This document shows positions 5,471 to 47,159 of a DNA stretch of 64,000 bases, piece after piece; position 1 is the first letter of the stretch, and every line of letters begins with the position of its first letter. The notes beneath the pieces were generated by a model, which ran no database searches, had not been told where the DNA came from, and saw nothing but the letters and a program-made list of their open reading frames with translations. Source of the DNA: Mantamonas sphyraenae STR306 (taxonomy: Eukaryota > Protista > CRuMs); the NCBI GenBank assembly GCA_026936335.1, contig JAPMXV010000040.1, forward strand, positions 124,001-188,000, read 5' to 3'. The position numbers and the translations under genes were made by a program.

Positions 5471-5518
5471 GAACGGGAAGGGGCCCACCCCGCACGCACG
5501 CACGCAAAACAAAGAATA

Positions 5519-5623
5519 TTGTATTGGCCACATGGCTGTGCACATGGCCTTCGGCTAGTCGATGCACCACATGGTGCGACAAGGTAGTATGGGTAAGCCT
5601 GTGGATTTGGATCTGTAGGCCGA
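5519..5623 (-). ncRNA. Candidate Fanzor omegaRNA scaffold
   Basis: 105-nt non-coding tail between the Fanzor stop and the element end with three consecutive hairpins, the last (GGCCAUGUG/CAUGUGGCC) pairing fully only on the Fanzor strand via G-U; the position matches known Fanzor/TnpB omegaRNA loci. Confidence 0.55.
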
Positions 5624-8600
5624 TCATTTGCCTATCCTTGGTCGCTGTACCCTTTGTCGCTTGGGAGCATGCTGTTGTGGTTGTGACCCACCCGAATCCT
5701 CTTCTTCCCCCACTTCCTCATCTCTTCTCTTCTTGCTTCTCTTGCCCGCCTTGTCTGCTGCCTTGCGTTGCACCTTCCTTCGTCGCTGTACCCTTTGTCG
5801 CTTGGGAGCATGCTGTTGTGGTTGTGACCCACCCGAATCCTCTTCTTCCCCCACTTCCTCATCTCTTCTCTTCTTGCTTCTCTCGCCTGCCTTGTCTGCT
5901 GCCTTGCGTTGCACCTTGATTTTCTTTGTTGGCTTCTCCATCCAGACGCCTGTGACAAAGAAGAGCATCTGCCGCCAGAAGATGCAGTGTGCAGAGCCTC
6001 GGTCTCTCTGAACTGCCTGGTGCAAGTTGTGCTCACCCTCGCCCTCCATCTCTTTGCATGCGTGCCGTTGTGCAAAGCGTTTGAGCTGCTTGGTGGCGTC
6101 AAACATGTTGGAGTCGATGTCCGACAGGCAGTGGCTGCTGCACGTCCGCCATCGCCCAAACTTCTCAGCGCCAAAGTCGTCCAAGTTGTCGACAGCGCTG
6201 CCACAGAAGCACTGCTGCGATGTATACCTCTCGTCTGCTGCAATGACCACAAAGTGGTTGGCCAGCATCTCCCGCATCTCCTGCGATTTCCCGCGTCCGC
6301 CAAACGTCTTTGTCGGCTGCAGCACAATCACTTGCTTCAGGCCCAGATGCGCGCGGAACCTGTGGATCACTGAGATCATCTCACGCACGCCTGCCATCCT
6401 TCGTTTGCGAAACGTCGCGTACTGCGCACGCATGTGCTTCGCATCCTTGTGCAAATCTTTTCCGAAGACACGTTGCTTGTACTCCTTCTTGAAGTCCGTG
6501 TACGACGCCAGCACTCGGTCCTGCCCTGCCTTGTGTGCCTGCACATCGTGGCTGTCCAGGGGCAAGGTGGCCACATACAGCTGGCCGTCCCGCACAAAGA
6601 TCGCCTCGACCCAGTCGCGTCCACGACCAGGGTCAATGCTGATCCACAGCACCTTGCGTGCATGCTCAAGGACTGCGTATCCATTCTTGGCAAAGGCCTT
6701 GACGTGCTCGACCAAGCCACGCTTCGGAACAGGGCAATCCGGAAAGCCAGGCGCGATCTGCTGGACGGCTTCCACCAGCGCGTCTGGCATGCCCGTTGGG
6801 TTCAGTACGGCAAGGGCAATCAGCGCGTTCTTCTTGGGGTCCAGCAGAAGGGGCAGGAGATGAGCCATCCTTGGCCTGATCAATGTTGCGAGGCTCGCCG
6901 GTGAAGGCAGGAGAGTGTGAACTCTTGGTGGCTGTAACACCAAGGCTCGCCTGTACTTCCCCTGAGCGGCGATTCCACCAGAGAGCATGCGCATGCTGCT
7001 GGCGCTGACGTTCTTCAGCAGGCACCTTGCGTTTTTCGTGCCAACGCCGCGCGTGAGCATGAGTATTGACTTCAGAGGCACGGTTTGCAGCGGCCGCTCT
7101 CCTGCCCAGTGTTGGACTGGCTGAGTATCCTCGTCATTGTTTTCTGGCATGCGACGAGCATACCGACACCGATACACTGCCTGCTTGAGCCATTTAGGGA
7201 GACTCGGGATGGCCTCATCCGTCAAAACCCACTCGCGTTCTTTCAGTGCATTCCACCAACCCGGGTTGGCGTCCGACTTGGCGTTCGGGTTGGCGTCTGG
7301 GGGGTCGTTTGGGTTGGCGTCCGGGTTGGCGTCCGGGTTGGCGTCCGGGTTGGCGTCCGGGTTGGCGTCTTGGGGGTCATCTGGGTTGGCGTCCGGGGGG
7401 TCATCTGGGTTGGCATTCCCGTTCGGCGTTCCATGTGCTTTCCACCTTGCTTCCATGGTGTTCACAAAGATCTTAAACGCGTACGTCTTGACGGAGTACG
7501 CGCCGAAGACGAACTGGCCGCCAATGTCAACCGGACCGGGAAACATCGCGTCAACACAGTCCAATGATGCTGCTGTCGATGCAATGGCGCGCTTTGCTTG
7601 TGTGCTTTTGAGATTGGTCTTCAGGTCGGGCTTGAGCATCACATCCAACAGCACAGACAACGCGTCCCGTTTGCCACGCACGTGCTTGCCGAGTTGATCC
7701 GAGAGACTTGTGCACACGTCCTCGTACGGGTCCCATGGAGATACACCTTGTGGGCGCTGCGCATCCACAGAGAGCTGCGCATCCACGGAGGACTCCTGCA
7801 CATCCATGGATGACTCCACATCCACAGAGGGCAGCACATCCACGGAGGACTCCTGCACATCCATGGATGACTCCACATCCACAGAGGGCAGCACATCCAC
7901 GGAGGACTCCTGCACATCCATGGATGACTCCACATCCACAGAGGGCAGCACATCCACGGAGGACTCCTGCACATCCATGGAGGGCCCCTGGACCTCCACT
8001 GAAGAGTGAGCAGCAGCCGCGGCAGCAGCCTTTGTGGCCTTGTGGATGGGCTGAGAGAACACAAAGTCACGTGTGTCCTTTGTCGACACCTGGTGGGTTT
8101 GGAACGCCTTCTTGGTCTTTGCATAGCTTGTACGCATGAGCGCGGCGACGCTGGCCACGATGGCGGACATGGGCAGCTCGCTGGGCGCCCCGTTCCTCAT
8201 CAGCGCCACGATCATCGGGTAGGCACACAAGGAGATGGCCGACTGCAGGCTGCCATTGAAGGCACGAGCGATGTCATTGGCCATGCTCGACACGGGCGCC
8301 TCCGAAAGATCCACCTTCAGACGCGTGACCATGAAGGAAAAGTCGAAACCATGTTGACCATCGCCCGCCTTCTGTATCCCGTTCCTGGTAAATCGTACAG
8401 ACTTGAGCTCCTCTGGGGTGTCCACGTTCTCCTTGAGTACCTTGAGGTTGTGCGTCGCGACTTTGCGCAGGGCCGTGAACGCTTCGAGCAGGTAGAAGGG
8501 CTTCACGCGGCTGTGAACTTCCACCATCCCGTCGACCACCATCCCGTCAATCATCGTCTGATCCTCTGTTGGCAGCTCCGCCTCGTCCAGCTCCGCCTCA

Positions 8601-11600
8601 TCCAGCTCCGCCTCATCCAGCTCCACCACATCCAGCTCCGCCTCATCCAGCTCCACCTCATCCAGCTCCGCCTCCTCCTGCTCGTCGCTGCCATCCACCG
8701 ATTGCTGGCGTCCATGGGGCGCAGTGAACCATGCAGTTGGGTCCTTTTTCACCTCTGGAATCACCTGGTCGACGAACCATGCTCGAAGCAAGGCTGTTTG
8801 CACGAGCATACAGTCCGCCAACGCTCCAAGAACGTCAGCCTCGCTCTTTCCAAGCCCACGCACGTTCGCCTCCAGCTTCAGATTCTTCTTGAGATCGCTC
8901 TGGTACTCAACAAAATCGTGCTCCCTGATCGCCGTGGCCGAAGGCAGCAGCGTGGTGAAATCAAACCCGTGCGGGATCCAGACGGGTCGCCCCCGCCGGC
9001 TTCCCTTCACGTCATCCTTGTCATAAAAAGCATCCTTGAGCGGCGTCAATGTCTCGCCCTCTGTTGTTGCCCCTGTCTGGAGCGCCACCTCGAACTGGTC
9101 CGCACGGGTCGCTGATGATAGCGTCGCAGGAGGGCGAAGCACCTGGCCATCCTTCCGCACGAGCACTGCCAGTTGTTTCTCGTGCCGTGCTGTGATCACA
9201 TGTGGAACAGATGTCCACCTTTCAACGGCCTCACGGGAACCGAGTGACTCCTCCTTGTTCTTTTTGAAGACAGATGCATCAAAGCCAGCAGGAATCTCCT
9301 CCACAAGCTGCGCGATTTCGGCTTCAGTTGCCGTCAGCAGGTAGGGCACCGCACAGTCCTCCTCGTCCGGCTCCGTGGCGTCCTCCTGGCCCACCATGGC
9401 CTTCGCAACATCCTTGTGAATGCCCTGTGCGAGATGGAATGGCAATTCCTGCACGTGCAGCGTCCCTTCCCGTGCACTGTGGCCACGCCCGAGCGTGTAC
9501 TCCATATGCATACGGGTGTCATCGGTGTTCTTCAGCTCTGGCTTGTGGTTGTAGGTGATGTTGACCTCAGTCAAGCCCAATGCTTGTGCCAACTCCTCCA
9601 CTGAGCGCGGTTTCGGCTTGGCCTGCGTACACAGTCTGCTGAACGACTCCATCACGGTCTGCGCGCGTTGATGATCGAGACCATGCACTCCTCCAAGTCG
9701 CTGGCAGACTGCTTGCGCCAAGGCGACGGCCGACATGGGACCATGGTCACGTTCGGTCTCCTCCAGACCCACCGTGAGCAGCTGCTTCCTCAGCGCTTCA
9801 GTCTCTTCTTCCTTCTTTTCGTCGTCACTCTTGATCGATGTTTTCCCTCGCGATTTGGTCTTTGTCGTCTTCCCCTTTTTGGGCTTCTTCTTGACTCCAT
9901 TGGCCCAGGTTATCAGTTTCCATGACGTCGCTTTGGCGTGCACTTTCTTCGTGTCCACCACATGGGCGTTGAAGATGTTGACAACCCGCAGCCCCGGAGC
10001 TGACCCATGGAGTGCGAGGCCAGCCATGAGACGCCCCTCGCGGTGGCACAGAACGACATCGTCCTCGGCCTTGACCTGGTTTTTGGCGGCCTGGTTTCTG
10101 ACGGCCTTATTTCTGACGGCCTGGTTTGTGACGAACTCGTCCAGTGACATCGTTGCCACTTGATGGGCAGCAAGGTAGTCGCGCATCACTGGCGCCAGGG
10201 TGGTGACAGTGGCACGAGCGGCGAACGCTCGCTGCTTGGCGTTGGAGAAGGTGTCCTGGGACGCAGCTGCACTCAGTTGCTGGTAGAAGCGTTGCAGCTC
10301 GGCTGGCGTGGCTCGACCTGCAAACAGTGCGGCTGTGGACACGACGTCGTCCACAACCACAACCGTGCGAGTCGAAAACAGCTTGCTCAATCTGGGCAAC
10401 ACAGTGTCGAGGATCGTGGTGACCCATTGCCAGGCAGAGGTGAACGTGGCGGGATGCGTGATGGTATGGTCGGAGAGGTGCAAGTAGCGAGCGGCGAGGC
10501 TGCTGAGGCCAACGTACACTGCGGCAAGGCGGGTTCCCCCCGACCCAGCGACGCCACGCTGCACACCACCCTCCACGCCCTCGTTGACAGCAGAGTCAGC
10601 CAAAGGTGGGGGTTGCCAGTTGTCGTTCAACACGTCCAGATACTTGGCGGTCACTGGCGTCTTGTCGCCGGCTGAAGTCGGAAGCTGTGTCAGCTGCCCT
10701 GCTGCCGATGTCTGCGTAGCGGGCACACGGTTGAAACGGAGCCCACGCACAGATGCGGTTGACCCAGCAACCTGCACCCGAGTCGAAGGGGGCCTTCCTT
10801 GAGGCGCTGGCGTTGTCCCTCGAGCCCGTGCAGCGTGCGCGTACAAACGCCTTCTAGCAGCTGAGGTGGAGCTCTCCTTGCTCTGCATCACAACTCGCGG
10901 GCCCTTGATGGCCATGGGCTTGCGGAACACGTTTGATTTGTTGTCGAGAGCCACGGTGCCCATGGCAGACGGCAACGTCCAATCCTCTTCCGGTTGAGAC
11001 TTGAGGAAAACCAGCCTGAAACCCGTGGGCGCACGCTCAGGCGCGGGCCACTCCTCGTCAGTCAGCTGCTGCGCAAGGTCATTGTACACACGGAATTTCC
11101 CTTCCGCCAGTGGAAGCCATGCCGTGTAGTGGGCCCCTTTGAAACAGAGCACCCCGAAGGGCACTTGCTGGTTTTGCTCCGGCAGGCCCTCGCCCACACG
11201 CTGCTGGAGTGCTCCTCGCTCCGCAAGCTTTGCAACCCCTGCGGCGTCCGCTGGCGGGGGGGTACCACCATGCAACATCTGGATGGGGAAGTCAGAGTCG
11301 AATGCGACCTCGAGGCGGTGATGGAAATCTGCCGAGTCACCCCACAGGTCGTCGCCCCCCGCGAGCGCTGTAGCGGCAAGGAAGAGATCGTTGCAGGCCA
11401 CGGCATACATGTCGTCGTCACAGAACATGGCCATGCACCAGGTCTGCCGCAGAAGGGCCGTGTTGACGACGCTGGGGTCTGTGTGTGCCGGCGCAAAGAA
11501 GAGGGGGCGGGTTAGCACTCTCCTGTCAGCGGGATTGAGTGCGGTTTGAGCTTACCTTGCTCCCCAGGCTCAGGCCCCAACTGGGTCGGGTCGTTCCCGC

Positions 11601-11931
11601 CTGTCGTTGCCTCCAGCCATCCGAGAAGGTACTTGCACATGGACGTTCGCAGAGGTGGAGAGGCGCGCACAGCAGTTGAATAGGACGACACCCAGCATGC
11701 CACCTTCGCGGTGTTGACACCGTTGACGTTGGCGTACCCTTGCATGTCACCTTCGGGCTCGCCCAGATTTGCAGGTAGTCTTGTTCGTGGTGTGTACAGG
11801 GAAATCGACTCGTTGTCGGCCACACAGGTCGGACACACCAGCGACACGTGAGATGGGGCTGACGTTACCCAGCACACCATGAGCACTGTCTCGTTGTTGC
11901 AGCTATGGTGCTGACACTTCAGAATCGACAT
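5624..11931 (-). CDS. Giant Fanzor (TnpB-family RNA-guided RuvC nuclease) with N-terminal USP-like protease and PIN-like region; exons 11931-11556 and 11478-5624, ~2076 aa
   Basis: RuvC-I WISIDPG (D 6634-6632), RuvC-II AADERYTSQQC (E 6232-6230), Zn ribbon CFCG...RTCSSHC, RuvC-III VQRDRGSAHCI (D 6004-6002); phase-compatible GTAAG...CTAAC...CAG intron. Confidence 0.85.
5641..5917. repeat. Near-perfect 141-bp tandem duplication (5641-5776, 5782-5917) encoding a basic NLS-like tail
   Basis: Two copies of KVQRKAADKAG[KE]RSKKRRDEEVGEEEDSGGSQPQQHAPKRQRVQR. Confidence 0.95.
7262..7416. repeat. 12-bp-based coding minisatellite (ANPD repeats) inside Fanzor
   Basis: Repeated gggttggcgtcc units. Confidence 0.9.
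7762..7981. repeat. 57-bp coding tandem repeat (SMDVQESSVDVLPSVDVES) inside Fanzor
   Basis: catccatgga recurs at 7801, 7858, 7915 and 7972. Confidence 0.95.
8573..8674. repeat. 15-bp coding repeat (ELDEA) inside Fanzor
   Basis: About seven cagctcc(g/a)cctcatc units. Confidence 0.9.
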
Positions 11932-11996
11932 TCTACACTCTTGAAACTATTGACTCCACCCGCGCACTTGGGCCAGCCGCCGCTTTTCAGAGCAGG

Positions 11997-12434
11997 TCAG
12001 TTGTCAAACGTCAAGCCTCGCGCCTCGCTGTCAAATGCCGCAGAAAGCTTGTTGCCCTCTCCGACGCCCCCGAGCACTTGCACACAGTTCACAAGCCCCA
12101 TCCTACACAGTCCTACGCACATCACTTGCTGCTCTGGAAGGGCCCCGCGCACGCCGTTGCCGACGAGAACATCGAAACGCACGTTGGCCGTTTGCCGGCA
12201 CAGAGGGTTGAAATCCTGCAGTTCACACTCACTGAGGAGCACAGTGGCCCATGTAACGATGTTGAGGAACAGAGGGAACAGAGCCTGGACCTGGACGACC
12301 AGGAGGGCGAGGAAGGTGGGGTGCTGCTTTCGCAGGCGTTGCACGTCACAATAGAGTCTCGGCTGTTTTGTACCTGGCAAACTCAATCCAGCAGGAGATA
12401 GATCACCGAGGAGGGGTTGAAAGGTAGGAGGCAT
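11997..12434 (-). CDS. Possible small accessory ORF of the transposon (~145 aa, MPPTFQPLL...), unknown
   Basis: ATG at 12434, same strand as both element genes, stops 65 bp upstream of the Fanzor ATG; no recognisable motif. Confidence 0.35.
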   Translation of the reverse strand: MPPTFQPLLGDLSPAGLSLPGTKQPRLYCDVQRLRKQHPTFLALLVVQVQALFPLFLNIVTWATVLLSECELQDFNPLCRQTANVRFDVLVGNGVRGALPEQQVMCVGLCRMGLVNCVQVLGGVGEGNKLSAAFDSEARGLTFDN

Positions 12435-13248
12435 GGCCACAACGCCAAGAAAAATTGATGAGTGGCTAGAAGTTGCCGCGTCGTCGCGCTGCGTCGTCGC
12501 CTCTACATGCAAATGTGGGTGTGATGTGCTGTCCCCGTTTTCAGTATGCTCCCTGTACGACGCCCGATTGCCCACCAAACCGGCAGACGCAGCGCTGGGC
12601 ACCGCACGGGCAAAAGAGTGATGCTTCGTTGCCGTCGCGTGACCAGCAAGTGGCACACGTCCACAGGAACCAAACAGAGTCAAGTGGAAAGGCTGTGCGA
12701 CTACACCAAGACACTACAGCAGGAAGCGCCCCTTGCCGTGGGGCCTTGGCCGTCCTCTACGACACAAAGAACCGCCTTGTCAGGCTACGTGAAAATCAGG
12801 TTGTGAATCCACGGTATCGGGCTTCACACGCTGTCTCATGGTGTTTGTAGATACATATTGGGACATGGGTCTGCTGAGGGGAGACGCATGTGCACAATAA
12901 TTGTACTGGGTGTCAAGGGGTGCATCTCAACGGCGTCAACCTGCATGCTGCTCCTCCCACGGGTGTTGGAGCCAAAACCAGAGGACCATGTGGCATGATG
13001 ACTGTATGCAGGCGTTCCATGGATTGTTTATGCACGGGGCGCATGGTACTGTTCGCAAAGCCCGGTTGCAACGGGGTCGCTCCTGACTGAGGAGACTGCT
13101 GCCAGGGGAGGTGGGCACTATCCACGCCTTGTAGGTGCCCCACTTAGCCCTCCCTGCTTCTCTTTGAGCCCCCCCGACACAAAGATGGCAATGGGAGTAC
13201 GGGTTTTTCAGCACCAGCGTGCGCCCTGAATGGCTACGCTCCACGATC

Positions 13249-14268
13249 CTACATGCGGTACCCGCAGTGATGGACCCAGTTCCTCACATCAGCAGCCGTA
13301 ACATGCCCCAATGCAGTACAGATCGCCGCGAAAGTGCAAATGTCCACTCGATGAAATTCCCTGCGGAGGACCGCCTTGAACTTGCTAAACATGAGCTCGA
13401 TGGGGTTGAGCGTAGGTGTGTAAGGCGGGAGAAACTCGACATCCACCCCATACCAGGTGCACAGCTGGCGTACAGCATCGCCTTTGTGGATGGAGCAGTT
13501 GTCCATGACCAGAACTGTTTGGCGGCAATCTCGCATGCGGGGCAAGAGGTCTTGCTCCAGGAACTCCATAAACAGCTGCCGGTTGTATGACCCCTCTCGC
13601 ATTGTGTACGCTACCAGTGGCGAGCGCCCACCGGTGCTGATGGCCGCCAGCACGCTGATGCGCTTTTGCTTGGGATGGTTCTCCACAACGACCGCTGGTT
13701 GCCCACGTTTCGCACGACCATATCTCCTGTAGCACACTCTGTTGTTCACTGCAGTTTCGTCCAAGAAGACCACGTTCGGCGCTCGGAACACACCGCGAAT
13801 CCTCATTGCTCGAGTAAACTCGCGTGTGCGCGCCACGGTGGATTCCCTGAACCGTTGCTTGGCGATAGCACTCACCTTCTTGCGAGTCAGTCCCATGCGC
13901 GCACAAGAACGGCGAATTGTGGACAGAGATACCACCTTGTTGCGATGAAGAGCAACGGCTACTTGCAACTCGTCCAGGTACAGTCGCGGATCATCGGCCA
14001 CCTGTTCAGCAATGAATTGGTCGTCATTGGCATCCAGGAGACGCCTGAACGGTGGTTGGGCCACAAGAGGGCGTACATGGCCCATGGCTCGGTGTTGACG
14101 TACAATCTTGGACACGACGGAAGGAGACACACCGAGAGCCTCCGCTGTGCCTCTGCACGAAGGACGCAAGCTGGATTGGTAGTGAAAGAGAATGCATTCT
14201 CGTTTGTCCGCCGAAAAGGCTTTGCCGTGGATGTATGACCCACCCGTTGCATTCGTTTTGACGGTCAT
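13249..14268 (-). CDS. IS630/Tc1-like DD34E transposase with paired-like HTH N-terminus (339 aa)
   Basis: VVFLDET, VLVMDNCSIH, FLPPYTPTLNPIE with 34 residues between the second D and E; HTH segments TAEALGVSPSVVSKIV and VSLSTIRR; uninterrupted frame from ATG 14268. Confidence 0.95.
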   Translation of the reverse strand: MTVKTNATGGSYIHGKAFSADKRECILFHYQSSLRPSCRGTAEALGVSPSVVSKIVRQHRAMGHVRPLVAQPPFRRLLDANDDQFIAEQVADDPRLYLDELQVAVALHRNKVVSLSTIRRSCARMGLTRKKVSAIAKQRFRESTVARTREFTRAMRIRGVFRAPNVVFLDETAVNNRVCYRRYGRAKRGQPAVVVENHPKQKRISVLAAISTGGRSPLVAYTMREGSYNRQLFMEFLEQDLLPRMRDCRQTVLVMDNCSIHKGDAVRQLCTWYGVDVEFLPPYTPTLNPIELMFSKFKAVLRREFHRVDICTFAAICTALGHVTAADVRNWVHHCGYRM

Positions 14269-14322
14269 TTTTGTTTTGCGTTGCTGACCACAGCGCGCGG
14301 AACGCCACAATACAGCAACCCA

Positions 14323-15642
14323 ATGAGCAGTTCGGGAGGGGTCAAACGCACCTTTTCGTCCATTTCGACACCCAACTCACCCGCGTTGCACTTTGAAGTG
14401 ACAGCAAGGTGGCGCAAGGCGCGTGTGGGGCGGTTGTTCCTGCCGAGTGTGGCTGCAGAGACGCCGCTGTTCATGCCTGTGGGCACGCAGGGGAGCATCA
14501 AAGGAATGACCACGCGGCAGTTGGAAGACTTGGACTGCCGAATCATCCTGGGCAACACGTACCATCTGGGCCACCGGCCTGGGGCCGATCTGGTGGACGA
14601 ACTGGGAGGCCTGCACACGTTTATGAACTGGAAGCGAGGCCTGCTGACAGACTCGGGTGGCTTCCAAATGGTGTCTCTGCTTGACCTGGCGCACATCACA
14701 GAAGAGGGGGTCCTGTTCAGGTCGCCGCACAACGGGGAGGAGATGATGCTGACGCCCGAGAAGAGCATCCAGCTGCAGAACGAGATTGGAGCCAACATCA
14801 TCATGCAGTTGGACGATGTGGTGTCGTCCAAGGTGCGTGGGAAGCGTGTGGAGGAGGCCATGGAACGCAGCACGCGGTGGTTGGACAGATGCATGGACGC
14901 GCACGAGAAGAAGCAGACGCAGAACCTGTTCCCCATTGTGCAGGGGGGACTGGACGAGGCTTTGCGTGCACGTTCGTTGGAAGAGCTGATTGCACGGGAC
15001 GCACCCGGGTATGCCATTGGCGGACTGAGTGGAGGGGAGGCGAAGGAGGACACGGCAAGGTGCATCGACCAGTGCACAAGCAAGCTTCCAAACGACAAGC
15101 CCCGGTACGCCATGGGCATTGGGTATGCCATCGACTTGGTTGTGTTTTCGGCCCTGGGCGTGGATATGTTTGACTGTGTGTTCCCCACGCGTACGGCGCG
15201 CTTCGGGCGTGCGCTGCTGATGTCTGGGGCCATCAATCTCAAGTCGTCGCAGTTTGCGGATGACTTTGAACCCATCGACGCAGAGTGTGGCTGCATGGTG
15301 TGCCAACAGTACACGCGTGCATACGTGCATGCCCTGGCAAAGGGCGAGGGAGCTGGCCTGCAGTTGATCACCTACCACAACATTGCCTTTCAGATGCGCC
15401 TCATGCGCACCATCCGTCATCACATCACCGAGGGTACCTTTGTCTCCTGGGTTTGCTGGTTTGTGCGCCAGCAGTACGGCGAGGACCCGGAGCAGTTTCC
15501 AACGTGGGTTGTGGATGCGCTGGCCACCGCTGGCATGGATGTGGTCAACCAGTGCGAGATTGATGAGGATGATGAGCAGGAGGGTGATGAGGAGGGTGAC
15601 AAGAAGGAGGGTGGTGATGACATGGAGCAGGAGACAATGTAG
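14323..15642 (+). CDS. QTRT1: Queuine tRNA-ribosyltransferase catalytic subunit
   Basis: TPLFMPVGTQG, ILGNTYHL, LTDSGGFQMVSL, GVDMFDCVFPTRTARFG, Zn site CGCMVC...H. Confidence 0.95.
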   Translation: MSSSGGVKRTFSSISTPNSPALHFEVTARWRKARVGRLFLPSVAAETPLFMPVGTQGSIKGMTTRQLEDLDCRIILGNTYHLGHRPGADLVDELGGLHTFMNWKRGLLTDSGGFQMVSLLDLAHITEEGVLFRSPHNGEEMMLTPEKSIQLQNEIGANIIMQLDDVVSSKVRGKRVEEAMERSTRWLDRCMDAHEKKQTQNLFPIVQGGLDEALRARSLEELIARDAPGYAIGGLSGGEAKEDTARCIDQCTSKLPNDKPRYAMGIGYAIDLVVFSALGVDMFDCVFPTRTARFGRALLMSGAINLKSSQFADDFEPIDAECGCMVCQQYTRAYVHALAKGEGAGLQLITYHNIAFQMRLMRTIRHHITEGTFVSWVCWFVRQQYGEDPEQFPTWVVDALATAGMDVVNQCEIDEDDEQEGDEEGDKKEGGDDMEQETM

Positions 15643-39410: not shown

Positions 39411-42400
39411 TCAGTCGTATTTGTCTTTCCAGGTGCCCGTTAGGCGCATTAGTAGCACAGGACTTCGATACACGTCCAACAGCTCGTGGTAGAGAGTCTC
39501 TTCGAGCATGAGGTCTTCGTCTTGGCGTGCAGCGTACAAATCGTCACACAGTTGCATGAGCGAGGTGACGTCGGGAAGGTCGGTAAACATCGCGTCGCGT
39601 CCCAGGCCCGTCAGTGACAGGCGCAGGAAGCGGCCCACACTGAGCACCACACCGACGTAGAGTCCCACCACACCTAGCGATGCAATCTGAGACACCACGC
39701 CAGACGGGAAACGTGCGCTCAGCGTCACCATGGTCAGATCTTCACCAGGAAACGCCGGTCCAGGTTCTTGCCGGATCACCCAGAAGGGCAGGCCTCGCGA
39801 TGACTGGTTCAGGCTGATGTATGCCGTCACGTTGAATGTGTAGTCACGGCGGTTGGACATGGGTCGCGGAACGCCTGTCGCGGGCACTTCGATGAAGCGC
39901 GGCAACAGGTCCGGCACAACCATCACCTCGTCGGACGAGCCCAGCTCCTGGGTCTCGTTAAGAATGCGGAACAGAGAATCACGCTGTTTCTTGTTCAGCT
40001 GGTGGCTGTATGACATCTTGATCACAGGGGACACAGGCGGACCCCTGCGCACAAAACTCAGCGTCGTCGTCAGCTCAAACGGCCGCGGGTCGGACATGCG
40101 TAGCATCATCGAGTCGTACGACGTTGGACTGATGTCCCATAGGTACTGTGAACCTTGTGTCATTCTCAATAGCTGCGAGTTTTCCAGTCCTTCCTCCGTG
40201 CCCAGCTCCGGCATCTCGTACTGTTTCTGCCAAACGTTCACCTCTGACTCGGTGGTATTTGTGATCCTTGCGGCCATTTCCAGCTGGTACAAGGGCGGAT
40301 AACCCGTGAGCAAACACGAGACATCGGTGCGAATAAGCAAATTCTTGCTCATCAGCGGCGTGCCCGTGCTCATGAGCAGCAGAGGCGACCACACAAGGAA
40401 CACCAACGCCACAAAGATGGCCACTCCCTGACCAATCTTCATGTCTGCACGCACTTTGTCTCCACGCGAGCGCGGGTAGCGCTTGTAGTAGTTGCGGTCG
40501 CACTGGATTGCGTACAACTGGGAGTAGATGTCCTCCAGCTTGAGCCACTCGAAAAAGGTCATGGTGGTCTTTGTGCAGATCCAGTCCAGGAGGGAGCGCA
40601 GCTCGTACACAAACGGGATCGAACGGTACACGATGTACGCGTACATCTCTTCCACTTGTTTGTATCGCATCAGAAACTGGCCGTATGTGTAGCGTGGGTA
40701 GCCATCTGCAACCTGCATGGCACTCAGCCACATGGCAATGGCCTTGAGGACGTACAGCGTACGCAGTGCGATATTGTTTGCAAAGGCCACACGTGCCAGA
40801 TCTGGCAGCCAGAATGTGATCAGCACGTGTTGCGTGATCACCATGCAAAAGTGCACCACTGTCTTGAGGGCAAGCGCACGGTACAGGTACAGCACACGAT
40901 CCACAATCAACAGGCCAAACTGCGAGAGCATGGCAAACACGAGCGGGCCCGGGATGCGGTTGTTCACCACAAAGTCGGTCAAACTTTCGCCCTGGCCGTT
41001 TGCGTTGGAGTCGGTGTACAGCGGAAAGAACGCAAGCAGGTAGATGAAGAGGATAAACTCGATGACAAACTGCCACACGTACCAGTCGCGGCCAGGCTTG
41101 TAGCCACTGTATCCGAGCCACGCCCACCAATCCCGCACAGGCACACGCGACCCCGCTTCTGTGCTTCCAAACAAGCTGTTGGACGAGCCCACGTTGAGTG
41201 ACGCCGCTCCCTTGCTTCTGCCCAGCTGGCCCAGTTTGGGCGCCACCGGACGCGCCGTCGACGCAGTGCTCTGGTTTTCGTTCATGTCGCTTGCTGTCCA
41301 CAACTCGCTTGGATGTGACGATGCATCGCTGGGGAACAACTCGTCCAGAAGGGCCATGCCTTTGCGTGTGGACGGCATGAGGTCCTCGGCTGCATCCTCG
41401 GCCGTCGCAGCTTCCATAGCGCGCACACGGTTCTGGTGGCGCTCAAACGCTCGGCGCACGTGTGTATCCATCAAGCGGGCAAGGGTGTCGATGCCCAACT
41501 TGTTGCGCATGTGTCTGTGGTAGCACAGCGCTGCCAGCAGAAGTAGATCCCAGTAGGTGGAGGCAAAGAAGGATTGTTCAAATTTGAACAGCCCGATCAC
41601 ACGCGGCATGGCCAGCTCTGCCGACCAGGTGCTTGTGGCTTGCGGCACATGACACACGTCTGGCCCACACGCCATCGTGTAGCGCCACAGGCCGTCGGAG
41701 CTGCGGCACGCGCACACAAATCCAAACTGGAAGAAGAACTTGAGCATGGTGCAACTCTGCGTGTAGATCAGCATCACGTCCCAGAAGCCGGCTGTGCGAA
41801 TACGCCGTGTCACACCGTACACCAGCATGGCCACAGGGTACATCACACTCAGCACGTCTGCGTCCGACGTGTGCACCATGATGAACAGCACAAAGCAGAT
41901 CAGCTGCGAGTTGAACTGCAGCCAGTGCCCCATAGCCTGCATCACATCCATCAAACCGTATGTCTTTGTCGTGCCCGCACCCTCCTCTGGTACCGATTCT
42001 GCGTCCGGACGGTCCACGTACACAACCTCCTCCTCAAACGCAGCCTCCAACAGTGCCTTGGCCTCGTTGCCCTTGCCCTCGCTCATGTTGTCGCTGCTGG
42101 TACTGCTTTCTTTGTCATCGTCGCCGCCGCTGTCGCTGTCGACTGGGAAACCACGCGTACTGGTGTTTTTGATGCTCATCTCCTCGCTGTCGCGGTCGTC
42201 GTCGTCAGAGAGTGCAACCACGTCTTCGTCTTCTTCGCCTGCACGCTTATTCGGGTGTGCGCTCATGGTGCCACGCCGCTTGCGCCACAAATAGTCGTCC
42301 AGGCGCTTCCACGGGTCTTGTGAGACGATCCAGTGTGCGAATTGCTGCCACTTGGATTTGTGCCGTTGCCTCTCGATTTCTGCCTCCACTTCTTCCTTGT

Positions 42401-45400
42401 GCGTGCGTGCCTCTTGTACCTTGCGTGCCATATCTGCTTCCCAGTTCATCACCGTCTCCAGCGTGTTGTCGCCTTCCGTAGCAGTGGCCGATCCTTGAAA
42501 GATGCGCAGTTCCTCCAGATGCTTCTTGCGCAGTGCCTTTTCGCGTGCCTGTTTTTCAAACTGCTCGCGCATGTCATCTTCCATCATTTCAAACTGGGCC
42601 TTTGCAATCTCGCGGCTCTTGATGCGGTCTGCGCGCACGGCCTTGAGCATGGTCTGGAAATCGGGATGCTGGACAATGGTACGCATGACTGTGATGAGCA
42701 CAAAGGCAGTGATGTCCAGCAGGGCACCATGGACGGTGAACGCGCTCCCATCGGAGCGGTTGAGCTTGTGCAGGCCCAGGCGCGGGATGCCCAGGTGGCC
42801 CACAAACGGGGCCTGATAGAACAGCTTGACCGTGAGCATGACGTACGTGAACACATGGATGTAGCGACACACCAGCAGCGGGTTGGTAAAGAACATCCTG
42901 TTCTGTTGAATGAACATCAGGGCGCCGCAGGCGTAGATGGCGCCGATGTACGTGTACGTGACGGTGCCCATGAGGAAACAAACCCAACAGATGGTGGGAA
43001 ACAGATAGCGCACAATCTTCTTGCGCAGCCATGAGCGGTGGTGCTCCTTGAGATGACCGTGCTTGTCGTACACCTCCTGCAAGGCGGCATCCGGGTGCTT
43101 CGGATGAGCAAACTTGACCTGCTGCCCCCAGCACATGAGGACAACGAAAAAGTCGGACAGGAGCTCGGTAGGGGTGGAGTTGTGCAGGCCGAGCCAGTCG
43201 ACGGTCTCGCTGCTCTGGATGTGATGCCAGGGCGGGTGGATGGGAGAGCCGGTGGCGTTGAGCAGGAGCACAGAGTACTGCCACAGCAGTGAGGTAAGGG
43301 AAAGGAAGCAAAAGCCAATCCAGATGCGTTTGATGGTGTTGCGTTTAAAGGCAACGCAGGCACCGCCAAAAGACAGGTTGATCAAGCCGATGAGGTCCAT
43401 GCGTACGTAACTGGCGACAAGCACGGTGAGAATGACAAACTCAAAGCCGTAGCGATGGAAGAGTTTGCTCACTCGTGTGAACAGGCGCGTTTCCTCCAGA
43501 CGAGCCAACTCTTGGCGCGAGCGCGTGCTGTCGCGGCGCAGTGTGGAATTGACGATGGCAAAGAGGAGCACGAGAAAGTCGGAGCGGAAAGCGTGCCAAG
43601 GGGTCGGGTAGTGCACGAGTCCGATCCAGGCGTCGATGAGGCCCGGATTTTCGTGCATGCCCTCAAACTGATAGACGTACTTGGCGACCATGATGGCCTG
43701 GTAGACGGAAAGGATGACCACCATGCGTGTGCGAGACAGGTGACGCAGAGGAACGCTGAAACAGGCCATGAGGACGACAATGGCCGAGAGTACAGACACG
43801 GAGCGCCAGTCGGTGACACCCGAGTAGAAAAGAAAGAAGAGGACGAGACGCGGGGTGTTGATCTCGAGCAGCCAACGCACAAACTGGATGGCGTAGGCGA
43901 TGCGCTCCCACGTGTCTGTGTCCTTGTCCTTGTCGGTGACCACCCATTGGCGAACGAGTTCGACGAGCTGGCCCGTGCTGTTGCGCATGCGGCGCATGGC
44001 TTGGTCGCGCTCGAGCAGCCGCCAGTACAGGACCGAAAACACAAAGACGGCAAGGTCGCCGGCAATGACGGGGTCAATCTGGCCCAGCGAGAAGCCCTTT
44101 GTGAGCCCGATGCCGAGATCGCCCGGTTCAAATGCACTGCCGTTTGCAGAGAGCGAGGCGGCGATGCCCCTGCTGACCACAGGGAACTGGAACACGTAGC
44201 GCATAAAGACGACGACGCTGGAGAGAAAGATAAACACAGGCCAGACGTGGATGAGGATGGGGCGCAGGTGGCGGTTGGCCTCGTGAAAGACGACGAGCAA
44301 GGCGCCCATGACGAGGTGGATGAGGCTGAGCACATTGGCGCGCAAAATCATGGGCACCAAGAGGAGAAGGAGGATGCATGCATAGAGGAGAAAGGCGTCG
44401 CTGAGCCATGCGAGCAGCTTGCTGAGTTTGTCAAACCAGACGGCTGCTTGCCAACGAGATCGGTCGCGAGCCGAGGCTTTCTCTGTTGCGGCATCGCGAT
44501 CATCGCTGTTGCCACTGTCTGTGGATTTAGGCATGCGGCGGGAGCGACGCGAAACGGAGGCCATAGCGGCCTGAGCAGGCGCGACGTAGCCGGCCGAGTG
44601 TTGGAGGAGAGTGTGTTCGACGTCGTCATCCCACGCGTCGGCACTGAGAAAGCGAAAGTGGCGGCCACTGCTGTCTGTGGTGCGCAGAGTGTCGTAGGTG
44701 CGTCGCATGGACTGAAAGGTGGCACTGCGAAAGGTGTTGAGTTGGACGGTGGCCAGAAGGAGGATGAGGAGTTCCCAAAAGATGCCTGCCCACAGGGTGG
44801 TGAAGTGGTCCAGGCCAATGTACTCGCTGACCTCTGTGTCCTTGAACCAAACCAACTGCCAAATGATGATGGTGACGACGACAGCCTGGCAGTAGACGAC
44901 GAGGCCGAGCCAGGTGCGCTCGGCAAAGTGTGGGAAGCAGAAGAAGAGAAGGCAAATGAAGAGAAAGACGGCGTTGAACACGGTGACGCGCTGGATGACG
45001 CAGAGGATGAGGCCGAGGACTGTGGCGCGAAAGGCGTGGACGACAATCATGCCCACAAACCACTGTGCGAGCATGATGAGGAACTCCTTGGCGGAGCCGA
45101 GGAAGGAAGTGAGCGAGTCGAGGAAGCGGTCAAAGAGGCCAACTTCCGACACGCGGCTGGCGGCACTGTTCTCGGTGGGGTCGATGGAGACGTTTGAACG
45201 CGCGTCATCGTCTTGGCTATTGCCTTCGCCGGTCATTTCCTTCCACCACTGCGGCGCAGCGGCCTTGTCGGCGGGTTGGGGCAATTGGTGGTCGCCATGC
45301 GGACCGAAGCCGTCGTGGCGGCCGTAGCGGTTGGCAATGGCGAGGATGATGGCGCCGACAAGCTGAAGGCCGATTGCCAAAAACGGGGATGCCAGGCGGC

Positions 45401-47114
45401 GCAGGCCAAACTGTTGGACGACAATGCTGGGAGCGACGACGTCAGAGTCCATGTTGACGATGTCCTGGAGGAGGATAAATGCGAGGACATAGGCGACAAT
45501 GGGAGCGAGGAGGGCGTGGACAAAGTGGTCGTCGACGCGAAGGACGGCGACAAAGGCAAGGAGGACGAGTGGGAGGGTGATGAAGCCCGGCAGCGAGACG
45601 CCCCAGATGATGAAAACCACATAGGTGATGTTGAGGGTCTGTTGGCGAGAGAGGGAGGCAAGGTAGGCGAGGATGGACCAGGCAAACTGGACCTGGCCCT
45701 GCTGCTTGGCTGAGTGTGCATAGGGCCTCTTGCTAGGGCTTGCGTCACTATCGCTGCGGCTTGAGTCACTGTCGTGTGCAGGGTGGTCGTCGTCGGCCAC
45801 GTCTGCAGTGTGGGAGGAAGCGTCGCTGCCTTTTCGATTTCTGCGGCGAGCACGAGGCACAAGGAGAGTGGACTGTCGGGGGGCCGCACTGCGCACAGAG
45901 GAGGAGGAAGCGGCATGGGTTGTCTCCATATTTGTTGCATCGGACGAGGAGGCGCCGTTGTCCTCGTTGAGGCGAAGAGAGGGCACGGTGGGAGGCTGGA
46001 AGGAACCGGCAATGGCAAAGTCTGAGCGTGCAGAGAGAGGACGTGTGCCTGGGTCGTGTTGGGGGTGGGAGGTAGCAAGGAGAGGCTGTGCGAGGTCGTT
46101 TGCAGTGCTGGCGGTCGTGAGGAAGCTGTCGTCTGCGGGAGGGGCTTCTCGTGTGGGTTTGCGAACCCGACCGATGGTTCGAGCGTACACACCGAGGTGG
46201 CGCATGCGGCGGTACATGTCGAGACGGGCGCGCTTCTGGCTCTGCTGGAACTGCACGTTGACGACAAAGAGGGTGAGGACGGAAAAGAAGTTGAGGAGTG
46301 CCTCGAGGTTGGAGGTGAGGCGGTCGTTGACAAAAAAGCGTACGACTCCGATCCACGAAGGGAGGAAGTGGTCGGACTCGTCAAACTGAGAGACGTAGAC
46401 GAAAATAATATGGGTAGGGCCGAGGAAAAGGTGTGCACGAAGCATGTTGCGGCGGATGCGAACAAGGCTGTTGTGTTCGGTGGTCCAGAGCCAGAGGAGG
46501 ACGGCAAAGACGGTGAGGTAGGCGAGGGAGAGGAGGGACGGCAGCGAGGCAGCAGCGACGCCAAGGAGGGAGAGGAGGATGGCAGTCCATGTGTTTGAAG
46601 AAACGCGCGGGGTGCTCGTGTCCTCCTTGGGGCCGTTGTCGGCCTGTGGATTTGTGTGCAGATCGGCGAGGGTTGTGCGCTTGACGGAGTAAACGAGGAT
46701 GGAGTCCACGGCGCGGAGGGAGTAGCGGCGCAACAGATAGTATGAAGCAAAGCTGCAGAGGAGGGCGAGGACGTCTGTGAGGACGTGGCGGACGTTGTTT
46801 GCGAGGTGTTTGTAAAAGCCGAGACCCAAGTGCCGGATGAGGTCGTGGTTGGCCGGTATGACGCCCTGGACTTCGAGGATGCCTGTGACAATGTGTGCCA
46901 CGATGGACGAGGAAGAAGAGAGACTCAGGAGGTGTGTGATGCGAGTGTAGGAGGCGAGACGGGGTGCTTTGCGTTCATGCAGCTGGACAGCGACCATGAG
47001 GATGAAGCAGAGCATGTATAGGATGGACGAGACACTGAGCTTTGTGCCGGCACTCACTAAAATGGTAGCAGGGACGACCACCTGCATAAAGAAAGCAGGT
47101 GAGCGGAGCTGCAT
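39411..47114 (-). CDS. PIEZO: Piezo-family mechanosensitive channel
   Basis: >2500 aa, many TM bundles; PFVYELRSLLDW...FFEWLKLEDIY, FLVWSPLLL, GVVGLYVGVVLSVGRF, YAARQDEDLMLEETLY...YRSP. Confidence 0.97.
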   Translation of the reverse strand: MQLRSPAFFMQVVVPATILVSAGTKLSVSSILYMLCFILMVAVQLHERKAPRLASYTRITHLLSLSSSSSIVAHIVTGILEVQGVIPANHDLIRHLGLGFYKHLANNVRHVLTDVLALLCSFASYYLLRRYSLRAVDSILVYSVKRTTLADLHTNPQADNGPKEDTSTPRVSSNTWTAILLSLLGVAAASLPSLLSLAYLTVFAVLLWLWTTEHNSLVRIRRNMLRAHLFLGPTHIIFVYVSQFDESDHFLPSWIGVVRFFVNDRLTSNLEALLNFFSVLTLFVVNVQFQQSQKRARLDMYRRMRHLGVYARTIGRVRKPTREAPPADDSFLTTASTANDLAQPLLATSHPQHDPGTRPLSARSDFAIAGSFQPPTVPSLRLNEDNGASSSDATNMETTHAASSSSVRSAAPRQSTLLVPRARRRNRKGSDASSHTADVADDDHPAHDSDSSRSDSDASPSKRPYAHSAKQQGQVQFAWSILAYLASLSRQQTLNITYVVFIIWGVSLPGFITLPLVLLAFVAVLRVDDHFVHALLAPIVAYVLAFILLQDIVNMDSDVVAPSIVVQQFGLRRLASPFLAIGLQLVGAIILAIANRYGRHDGFGPHGDHQLPQPADKAAAPQWWKEMTGEGNSQDDDARSNVSIDPTENSAASRVSEVGLFDRFLDSLTSFLGSAKEFLIMLAQWFVGMIVVHAFRATVLGLILCVIQRVTVFNAVFLFICLLFFCFPHFAERTWLGLVVYCQAVVVTIIIWQLVWFKDTEVSEYIGLDHFTTLWAGIFWELLILLLATVQLNTFRSATFQSMRRTYDTLRTTDSSGRHFRFLSADAWDDDVEHTLLQHSAGYVAPAQAAMASVSRRSRRMPKSTDSGNSDDRDAATEKASARDRSRWQAAVWFDKLSKLLAWLSDAFLLYACILLLLLVPMILRANVLSLIHLVMGALLVVFHEANRHLRPILIHVWPVFIFLSSVVVFMRYVFQFPVVSRGIAASLSANGSAFEPGDLGIGLTKGFSLGQIDPVIAGDLAVFVFSVLYWRLLERDQAMRRMRNSTGQLVELVRQWVVTDKDKDTDTWERIAYAIQFVRWLLEINTPRLVLFFLFYSGVTDWRSVSVLSAIVVLMACFSVPLRHLSRTRMVVILSVYQAIMVAKYVYQFEGMHENPGLIDAWIGLVHYPTPWHAFRSDFLVLLFAIVNSTLRRDSTRSRQELARLEETRLFTRVSKLFHRYGFEFVILTVLVASYVRMDLIGLINLSFGGACVAFKRNTIKRIWIGFCFLSLTSLLWQYSVLLLNATGSPIHPPWHHIQSSETVDWLGLHNSTPTELLSDFFVVLMCWGQQVKFAHPKHPDAALQEVYDKHGHLKEHHRSWLRKKIVRYLFPTICWVCFLMGTVTYTYIGAIYACGALMFIQQNRMFFTNPLLVCRYIHVFTYVMLTVKLFYQAPFVGHLGIPRLGLHKLNRSDGSAFTVHGALLDITAFVLITVMRTIVQHPDFQTMLKAVRADRIKSREIAKAQFEMMEDDMREQFEKQAREKALRKKHLEELRIFQGSATATEGDNTLETVMNWEADMARKVQEARTHKEEVEAEIERQRHKSKWQQFAHWIVSQDPWKRLDDYLWRKRRGTMSAHPNKRAGEEDEDVVALSDDDDRDSEEMSIKNTSTRGFPVDSDSGGDDDKESSTSSDNMSEGKGNEAKALLEAAFEEEVVYVDRPDAESVPEEGAGTTKTYGLMDVMQAMGHWLQFNSQLICFVLFIMVHTSDADVLSVMYPVAMLVYGVTRRIRTAGFWDVMLIYTQSCTMLKFFFQFGFVCACRSSDGLWRYTMACGPDVCHVPQATSTWSAELAMPRVIGLFKFEQSFFASTYWDLLLLAALCYHRHMRNKLGIDTLARLMDTHVRRAFERHQNRVRAMEAATAEDAAEDLMPSTRKGMALLDELFPSDASSHPSELWTASDMNENQSTASTARPVAPKLGQLGRSKGAASLNVGSSNSLFGSTEAGSRVPVRDWWAWLGYSGYKPGRDWYVWQFVIEFILFIYLLAFFPLYTDSNANGQGESLTDFVVNNRIPGPLVFAMLSQFGLLIVDRVLYLYRALALKTVVHFCMVITQHVLITFWLPDLARVAFANNIALRTLYVLKAIAMWLSAMQVADGYPRYTYGQFLMRYKQVEEMYAYIVYRSIPFVYELRSLLDWICTKTTMTFFEWLKLEDIYSQLYAIQCDRNYYKRYPRSRGDKVRADMKIGQGVAIFVALVFLVWSPLLLMSTGTPLMSKNLLIRTDVSCLLTGYPPLYQLEMAARITNTTESEVNVWQKQYEMPELGTEEGLENSQLLRMTQGSQYLWDISPTSYDSMMLRMSDPRPFELTTTLSFVRRGPPVSPVIKMSYSHQLNKKQRDSLFRILNETQELGSSDEVMVVPDLLPRFIEVPATGVPRPMSNRRDYTFNVTAYISLNQSSRGLPFWVIRQEPGPAFPGEDLTMVTLSARFPSGVVSQIASLGVVGLYVGVVLSVGRFLRLSLTGLGRDAMFTDLPDVTSLMQLCDDLYAARQDEDLMLEETLYHELLDVYRSPVLLMRLTGTWKDKYD

Positions 47115-47159
47115 TGCGTGTTGAGGTTTTGTTTTGTTGTGGCTTGGTGAGGGCGGCAA

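Follow-up and report, generated by a model that had tools for sequence, protein, structure and literature searches.

The 64,000-nt window analysed here is a stretch of contig JAPMXV010000040.1 (positions 124,001 to 188,000, forward strand) from the genome of Mantamonas sphyraenae STR306, a diploid protist of the CRuMs group in which most genes have a single exon and repeats, largely unclassified, make up 12% (PMC10492846). It contains a transposon of 8,792 bp, at 5519-14310, bounded by TA at 5517-5518 and TA at 14311-14312. The features of the element are read on the minus strand and include a transposase gene and a giant two-exon gene ending in a Fanzor-type nuclease domain. The favoured reading, given a probability of roughly 0.62, is that this is an IS630/Tc1 cut-and-paste element with a Fanzor1 homing nuclease that has been enlarged by N-terminal accessory modules. 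All coordinates are positions in the window, and copies elsewhere in the M. sphyraenae genome are named by contig (C17, C29 and so on). Searches for copies and families covered 25,061,354 bases in 78 contigs of the host genome.

The limits of the element, which a first-pass annotation of the sequence had placed at exactly these positions, are common to ten copies with differing flanks. This emerged from the genome-wide search that the annotation had proposed: ten copies keep the 3' end, each with its own flanking DNA, and an eleventh, on C29, keeps only the 5' 3.8 kb. No short ghost copies were found when the 3' end was sought across the genome. Six copies make up subfamily A1 and are 97.6-99.3% identical. 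Subfamily A2 is represented by C68 and A3 by C52 and C71, in which most of the transposase is deleted, while C57 is a recombinant of A2 and A1. The duplicated dinucleotide at the two ends is TA/TA in six copies, TG/TG in one and TT/TT in one, with unequal ends (TA/TG) only in the recombinant. The terminal two bases thus co-vary at both ends, which identifies them as a target duplication. The duplicated target is TN and TA is not obligatory, so the description of the element as lying between TA dinucleotides is right for the window copy and not as a rule. Ends of the form TGT...ACA with a 6-bp duplication were rejected, since they suit one copy only, and in eight copies a duplication of 2 bp co-varies between the ends. 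An assembly artefact is excluded by the ten independent copies on different contigs, and a decayed pseudogene was likewise rejected. The near-identity of the six A1 copies, the intact transposase and the matching target duplications support the view that the element is autonomous, as the first annotation had it, and young. An older, decayed relative is present at ~228-231 kb on C34, with 70-80% DNA identity, stops, deletions and unrecognisable ends.

The transposase (339 aa, 13249-14268) is of the IS630/Tc1 DD34E type, matching PF13358 with an E-value of 5e-27 and NF033545 with 126 bits against a cut-off of 100. Its triad is D170 (13759-13761), D256 (13501-13503) and E291 (13396-13398), with a spacing of 34, and it has the N-terminal helix-turn-helix expected of the IS630/Tc1/mariner group; the gene is as intact as had been proposed. 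The terminal inverted repeats of tens of bp that also characterise this group are not present. The exact inverted repeat is only TTGT (~4 bp) and the terminal 150 nt share no 7-mer. The closest transposases outside this genome are fungal and bacterial, with 30-41% identity, and no Fanzor was found among the listed genes beside the two closest of these (fungal, 30-36%). A non-coding spacer, at 12626-13248, is ~80-84% conserved between the subfamilies.

The giant gene encodes exactly 2,076 aa, the approximate length first estimated, in two exons. Exon 1 (125 aa, 11556-11931) is followed by a predicted phase-1 spliceosomal intron of 77 nt (11479-11555; GT-AG, with GTAAG, a branch motif and CAG) and by exon 2 (1,951 aa, 11478-5624). 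The start Met, the phase-1 intron position, the donor, the branch motif and the acceptor are common to the three subfamilies, which are ~60-70% identical in this region and have introns of 75-102 nt. Between the subfamilies the ratio of non-synonymous to synonymous substitution rates (dN/dS) is 0.09-0.36 in every domain, with exon 1 at 0.16-0.32, and dS is near saturation in the middle of the gene. Low dN/dS in all of the domains, together with the conserved intron and start, indicates a selected protein and not a chance reading frame. Most copies retain an open long frame; C41 and C57 carry a frameshift. The intron of copy C17, 75 nt long, has no stop, leaving the unspliced frame open as well, with 2,058 codons between stops. 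The exons were searched and folded separately, and the queries for the protease described below used the stop-free read-through frame of C17, including 25 intron-coded residues.

The C-terminal part of the giant protein carries the hallmarks of a Fanzor. A RuvC domain and Zn ribbon are encoded at 5930-6634, with RuvC-I D1741 (IDPG, 6632-6634), E1875 (DERYTS, 6230-6232), four Zn cysteines between residues 1882 and 1909, and D1951 (QRD, 6002-6004). All of these are invariant in ten full copies, upholding the triad and ribbon of the first-pass annotation. The absence of the canonical RuvC-II Glu was also correctly seen, as this position is Gln (Q1846) and the alternative Glu, E1875, lies six residues before the first Zn cysteine, C1882. 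The DPG motif with the alternative Glu is a Fanzor fingerprint found in <1% of TnpB homologues (PMC10711439). The Fanzor motif defined by Bao and Jurka (PMC3627910), D-X(125,275)-[TS][TS]-XX-C4 finger-X(5,50)-RD, is matched with spacings of 136 and 40 and ends at D1951. The strict pattern CxxC..CxxC-x(4,8)-D used by Yoon et al. for Fanzor-like TnpBs, a search tool and not a definition of the Fanzor family, is not matched, the cysteines here being CxC and CxxxC at ~40 residues before the RD. In Pfam only the Zn ribbon was detected, weakly (PF07282, E 0.005). Based on Atlas language-model features, the last 602 residues score 0.95 to Fanzor1-like clusters, with 175-179 features in common. These clusters contain proteins of 700-990 aa from fungi and giant viruses, labelled Cas12f1-like_TNB, and fall within the Fanzor1 size class. 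Taken together, the motifs support the C-terminus being a Fanzor-type RuvC, which the language-model features place with Fanzor1.

Upstream of the RuvC, residues ~1119-1740 (6635-8500) are probably the REC/WED part, judging by position and by the resemblance of the last 602 residues to the Fanzor1-like clusters; subfamily-specific repeats interrupt it at 7757-8005 and 7249-7428. Downstream is a basic tail that appears similar to a nuclear localisation signal (5624-5923, stop at 5624-5626) and includes a 141-nt duplication at 5635-5916. Residues ~760-1045 (8723-9574) form a further conserved region (dN/dS 0.22-0.28), for which family searches returned no match.

Between the stop and the end of the element are 105 nt of non-coding sequence (5519-5623) that are 98-100% identical in the ten copies and contain hairpins. 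This segment offers no usable covariation, and an Rfam search gave no match. These near-invariant last 105 nt are likely to be the omegaRNA, of which they would form the scaffold. In the SpuFz1 elements a CA dinucleotide is conserved on one side only, the target-adjacent motif (TAM) is CATA, and the omegaRNA consists of the right end plus 14-15 nt (PMC10432273). A one-sided flank motif is also seen here. On the left flank, the base before the duplication is G at 9/9 independent sites, and 7/9 have TG there (P ~6e-5 against TA sites in the window), and the mirror-image CA on the right flank is found at 0/10. By analogy with SpuFz1, the 5' target duplication TA with the upstream TG (14311-14314) gives a predicted TAM of 5'-TGTA, perhaps relaxed at its last base. 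The predicted guide would be the flank beyond 5517; the 3' target duplication TA and the next ~15 nt of host DNA occupy 5502-5518, and this flank differs for each copy.

The extra ~1,100 aa of the protein hold its N-terminal accessory modules. Exon 1 encodes a conserved four-cysteine Zn-finger-like motif (C6, C11, C33 and C36) followed by a Cys box resembling that of the ubiquitin-specific proteases (USPs), with C79 (11695-11697) as the putative catalytic residue. The second half of the protease is encoded in exon 2 (11000-11478), with H242 (11129-11131) and N258/D259 (11078-11083), so that the Cys and His are on different exons; these residues are kept in all copies. Compared by eye with the known motif, C79, H242 and N258/D259 fit the USP register. 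The Atlas neighbours of this module, which serve as a lead only, are UCH, CYLD-like, C28, C70 and C98 clusters at 0.85-0.87. The module is therefore described here as a putative USP-like protease with Cys, His and Asn/Asp, at the level of a lead.

Residues ~446-760 (9575-10519; dN/dS ~0.3) resemble a 5'-nuclease of the FEN/XPG type, with an apparent PIN core and helix-turn-helix. Nearly all of the top 22 Foldseek matches are to T4 RNase H, ExoIX, T5 FEN and XRN, although these are weak (E 0.02-0.55). In VIA most of the non-helical rows are XRN1, GEN1, XPG, EXO1 and FEN1, with Z of 4.4-5.9 and a root-mean-square deviation of ~5 over 160-220 residues. Compared by eye with the motifs of these nucleases, the domain has a Gly after strand 1, HRE in place of the DxD motif, and no conserved ExE. 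Of the seven acidic metal-binding residues expected in FEN/XPG nucleases, the only apparent survivors are the two Asp of the second strand and one Glu further on. Since most of the acidic metal ligands have seemingly been lost, the domain is read as a DNA-end-binding pseudo-nuclease that is probably inactive. The earlier label 'PIN-like' captures the core of the domain, which is better termed a FEN/XPG-type 5'-nuclease fold. Likewise, the extra enzymatic modules first proposed are supported as a cysteine-protease-like and a PIN-superfamily module; with the latter catalytically degenerate in appearance, the word 'enzymatic' is probably valid for the protease only.

The element is not alone in this genome. 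A second group of transposases, family B, is 46-48% identical to that of the element. Those on C59, C11, C46 and C43 are followed by frames of 1,610-1,685 aa that start with the protease, the frame on C43 being broken. In family B the corresponding protease piece contains the finger cysteines and a His box of textbook USP style, and it matches a USP chain with E 0.045. RuvC matches are found at the end of the C43 copy and of a 31% relative on C2. From these sequences, family B is a second family with the same layout as the element. Another ~15 frames, 1,500-2,250 aa long, have a Fanzor-like RuvC at their ends with 21-30% identity and no DDE_3 transposase nearby. RuvC-ended giant frames are located at C52:522764, C1:307917, C30:283445, C56:207319, C51:197507, C34:646911, C42:121571, C52:75076, C45:157674, C18:224466, C43:546862, C29:561854, C22:94962 and C34:219988. 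Five more IS630-type transposases (46-48%) are present at C2:226624, C44:317882, C44:207222, C11:277663 and C57:110903, and no RuvC or family B cargo match was found beside them.

The element has also taken up host DNA. A host coding piece from C16 (12142-12464, 83-85% identity) is present only in subfamily A1. Next to it is host intergenic DNA from C8 (11941-12135, 82%), derived from between divergent adaptin and cyclin genes. In A1 this piece ends ~9 nt before the ATG of the giant gene, and it is likely to be a captured bidirectional host promoter and a candidate promoter for that gene. Within exon 2, an in-frame insert of 56 nt (10536-10592) is the antisense of a subtelomeric repeated gene family (86-88%) and is absent from the other two subfamilies. 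On C29 (~73.8-79 kb), the reading frame of exon 2 continues into a subtelomeric repeated gene, and the resulting 1,902-aa fusion has the protease but no Fanzor. This subtelomeric family encodes proteins of 1,100-1,460 aa made of ~1.1-kb repeats, is found at many contig ends and has no Pfam match. It trades DNA with the element, as C15 carries 330 nt of the element tail.

The subfamilies are themselves mosaic. The first 1.2 kb (transposase) and last 1.2 kb (RuvC and RNA end) are 93-100% identical between them and the middle is 56-77% identical; on this pattern of identity, they are old cassettes on a freshly homogenised chassis. The left flanks of copies C17 and C41 agree over at least 1.5 kb and their elements over 6.5 kb (99%), and their right flanks differ; either the copies have recombined or the locus is structurally heterozygous. 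Template switching during break repair would give captured pieces, swapped middles and the fusion, and suggests a route by which the giant gene may have been assembled.

Under the favoured reading, that of an enlarged Fanzor1 homing nuclease, the transposase would insert the element at (T)G-TN sites, and the omegaRNA would be a transcript that crosses the right end and extends ~15 nt into the flank. The C-terminal 600-850 aa would bind this RNA, recognise the TAM TGTA and cut the element-free site, either in the excised donor or in the homologous allele of the diploid host, with repair then copying the element back. Restoring or spreading the element by cutting empty sites has been proposed for OMEGA systems (PMC13565253). 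The USP-like domain would most likely strip ubiquitin or a ubiquitin-like tag, shielding the proteins of the element or editing ubiquitin at the break, and the FEN-like domain would most likely bind cut or flapped DNA without cutting it. Where repair draws on other copies or on unrelated DNA, the ends would be homogenised, the middles exchanged and host pieces captured. A more ambitious and quite tentative version is a single-chain RNA-guided machine that finds its site, cuts it, holds the ends by the pseudo-flap-nuclease, strips ubiquitin and steers repair to copying. It would then be a natural homing drive adapted to eukaryotes, in which N-terminal cassettes can be exchanged while the RuvC-omegaRNA chassis stays common, and which has expanded into several families in one genome.

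Several results weigh against the favoured reading. The Atlas score of the protease is below 0.9, and a Pfam scan of the giant protein for a UCH domain gave no match. The hairpin stability of the 3' 105 nt is modest (fold z -1.85). A one-sided preference of the transposase alone could yield the flank bias, so that the flank motif supports guidance and is no proof of it. The two AlphaFold models have pLDDT of only 33-35 and no fold match reached E 0.001. Modelling of the C-terminus had been suggested as a check on its RuvC identity. The model (pLDDT 33) does arrange its strands and helices in the order seen in RNase H, but its fold matches are generic, with RuvC, Cas12 and IscB at Z 5-6 ranked below ASKHA proteins. 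Finally, no sequence homologue was found outside the host genome by word-index searches for long and for normal-sized relatives, a full HMMER scan, and searches of viral and metagenome contigs and PDB sequences. Profile searches of 1.84 billion representatives returned no match to the giant proteins, the PDB sequence search gave only chance antibody and repeat matches, and nothing was found in PHROGs and NCBIfam using the cargo.

The main rival is a polyprotein, a 2,076-aa chain whose low-complexity linkers would be cleaved by the protease to free a normal-sized Fanzor1 and a separate DNA-binding protein. The protease would then resemble viral leader proteases and the working nuclease would not be giant. 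Such an arrangement suits the N-terminal position of the protease, the presence of the viral leader protease C28 and of C70 among its Atlas neighbours, the variable linkers between modules and the in-frame joining of the protease to an unrelated protein on C29. It is nevertheless unlikely, as the Cys and His boxes read as USP type, finger cysteines and a canonical His box in the style of USPs occur in the sister family, and the linkers vary between subfamilies with no conserved site seen in them by eye. It is a little less probable that cutting is not the chief task of the protein and that the Fanzor part brings the deubiquitinase either to host loci or to the site of the element itself, where it might, for instance, relieve silencing that depends on ubiquitin. 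The accessory modules are constrained as strongly as the RuvC, and many of the sister frames are far from any DDE_3 transposase, as such an effector would predict. However, domesticated non-cutting TnpBs usually lose their catalytic residues, whereas the three residues here are invariant in ten copies and the predicted guide would match only the element's own empty site.

The uptake of host DNA, including the in-frame insert and the in-frame fusion, makes it conceivable that the extra 1,100 aa are cargo captured in frame by accident, with only the Fanzor tail mattering and no joint function. In addition, no relationship was detected between the FEN-like part of family A, the family of the window element, and the middle part in family B. 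This is improbable given the saturated dS and low dN in all modules of the three subfamilies and the presence of the protease at the same place in family B, with its transposase 46% identical. The non-specific fold searches would also be compatible with the tail being another RNase H-fold nuclease, such as a resolvase-like enzyme that is not RNA-guided, or with the open reading frame being an assembly chimera. The rarity among TnpB homologues of DPG with the alternative Glu, followed here by the Zn ribbon and RD, and the ten independent copies on different contigs make both very improbable.

Compared with the Fanzor1 proteins SpuFz1, GtFz1 and PpFz1 (PMC10432273, PMC11423790), the element shares the RuvC with DPG, alternative Glu, RD and Zn ribbon, the TA duplication, two conserved bases at the 5' end only, and a short conserved non-coding stretch past the stop. 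It differs in lacking 30-bp inverted repeats, in having no detectable sequence similarity, and in its added N-terminal Zn finger, protease and FEN-like modules. At 2,076 aa it is ~3x the 600-800 aa reported for Fanzor1, which reach ~800 aa (PMC11423790, PMC10711439), as far above normal size as had been claimed. The Tc1/mariner elements PGv-1 and PUl-1, which carry a Fanzor1 (PMC3627910), and IS630-linked TnpB (PMC10691335) similarly have a DD34E-type transposase upstream of the Fanzor and TA duplications, and PGv-1 also carries a second nuclease. In those systems the extra enzymes are separate small genes, whereas here they are fused to the Fanzor in a gene that is predicted to be spliced and include a protease. 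A transposon protein fused to a papain-fold cysteine protease is also known from the OTU and VTD deubiquitinases of Helitrons and Helentrons, of which the VTDs are active (PMC9741609). Those are of the OTU/VTD class on a RepHel transposase, unlike the USP-like module on a predicted RNA-guided nuclease seen here. The FEN/XPG/XRN superfamily (T4 RNase H, ExoIX, T5 FEN, GEN1, EXO1) has a strand and helix order that residues ~446-715 appear to follow, with a probable helix-turn-helix after them; here the domain is embedded in a Fanzor chain and only the Asp pair and one Glu look kept. No such fusion and no report of a Fanzor from Mantamonas were found in the literature searched, with many subscription papers and Repbase outside its scope, in agreement with the first annotator, who knew of no description of this architecture. 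Judged by its sequence, the element would work like a Fanzor1 and bears its fingerprints, while departing sharply in size and architecture.

The genes on either side of the element encode a membrane protein and a queuine tRNA-ribosyltransferase. The insertion is ~12 nt upstream of the apparent start of the latter gene (14311-14326), the promoter of which may be affected. Elsewhere in the window, a 2,582-aa open frame is present on the minus strand at 39411-47159.

Known Fanzors are compact nucleases. If the favoured reading is true, a lineage tripled in size through a ubiquitin-protease-like and a DNA-end-binding module would be a eukaryotic counterpart to the growth of TnpB into Cas12, achieved by another route, towards the handling of host proteostasis, chromatin or repair. 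It bears upon the role that Fanzors play for DDE transposons within their hosts. The host is a cultivable diploid protist whose genome sequence yields the predicted TAM and scaffold and ten predicted guides. The junctions between the modules would show where effectors can naturally be joined to an RNA-guided scaffold. As the giant proteins are invisible to profile searches, more of them may have been overlooked.

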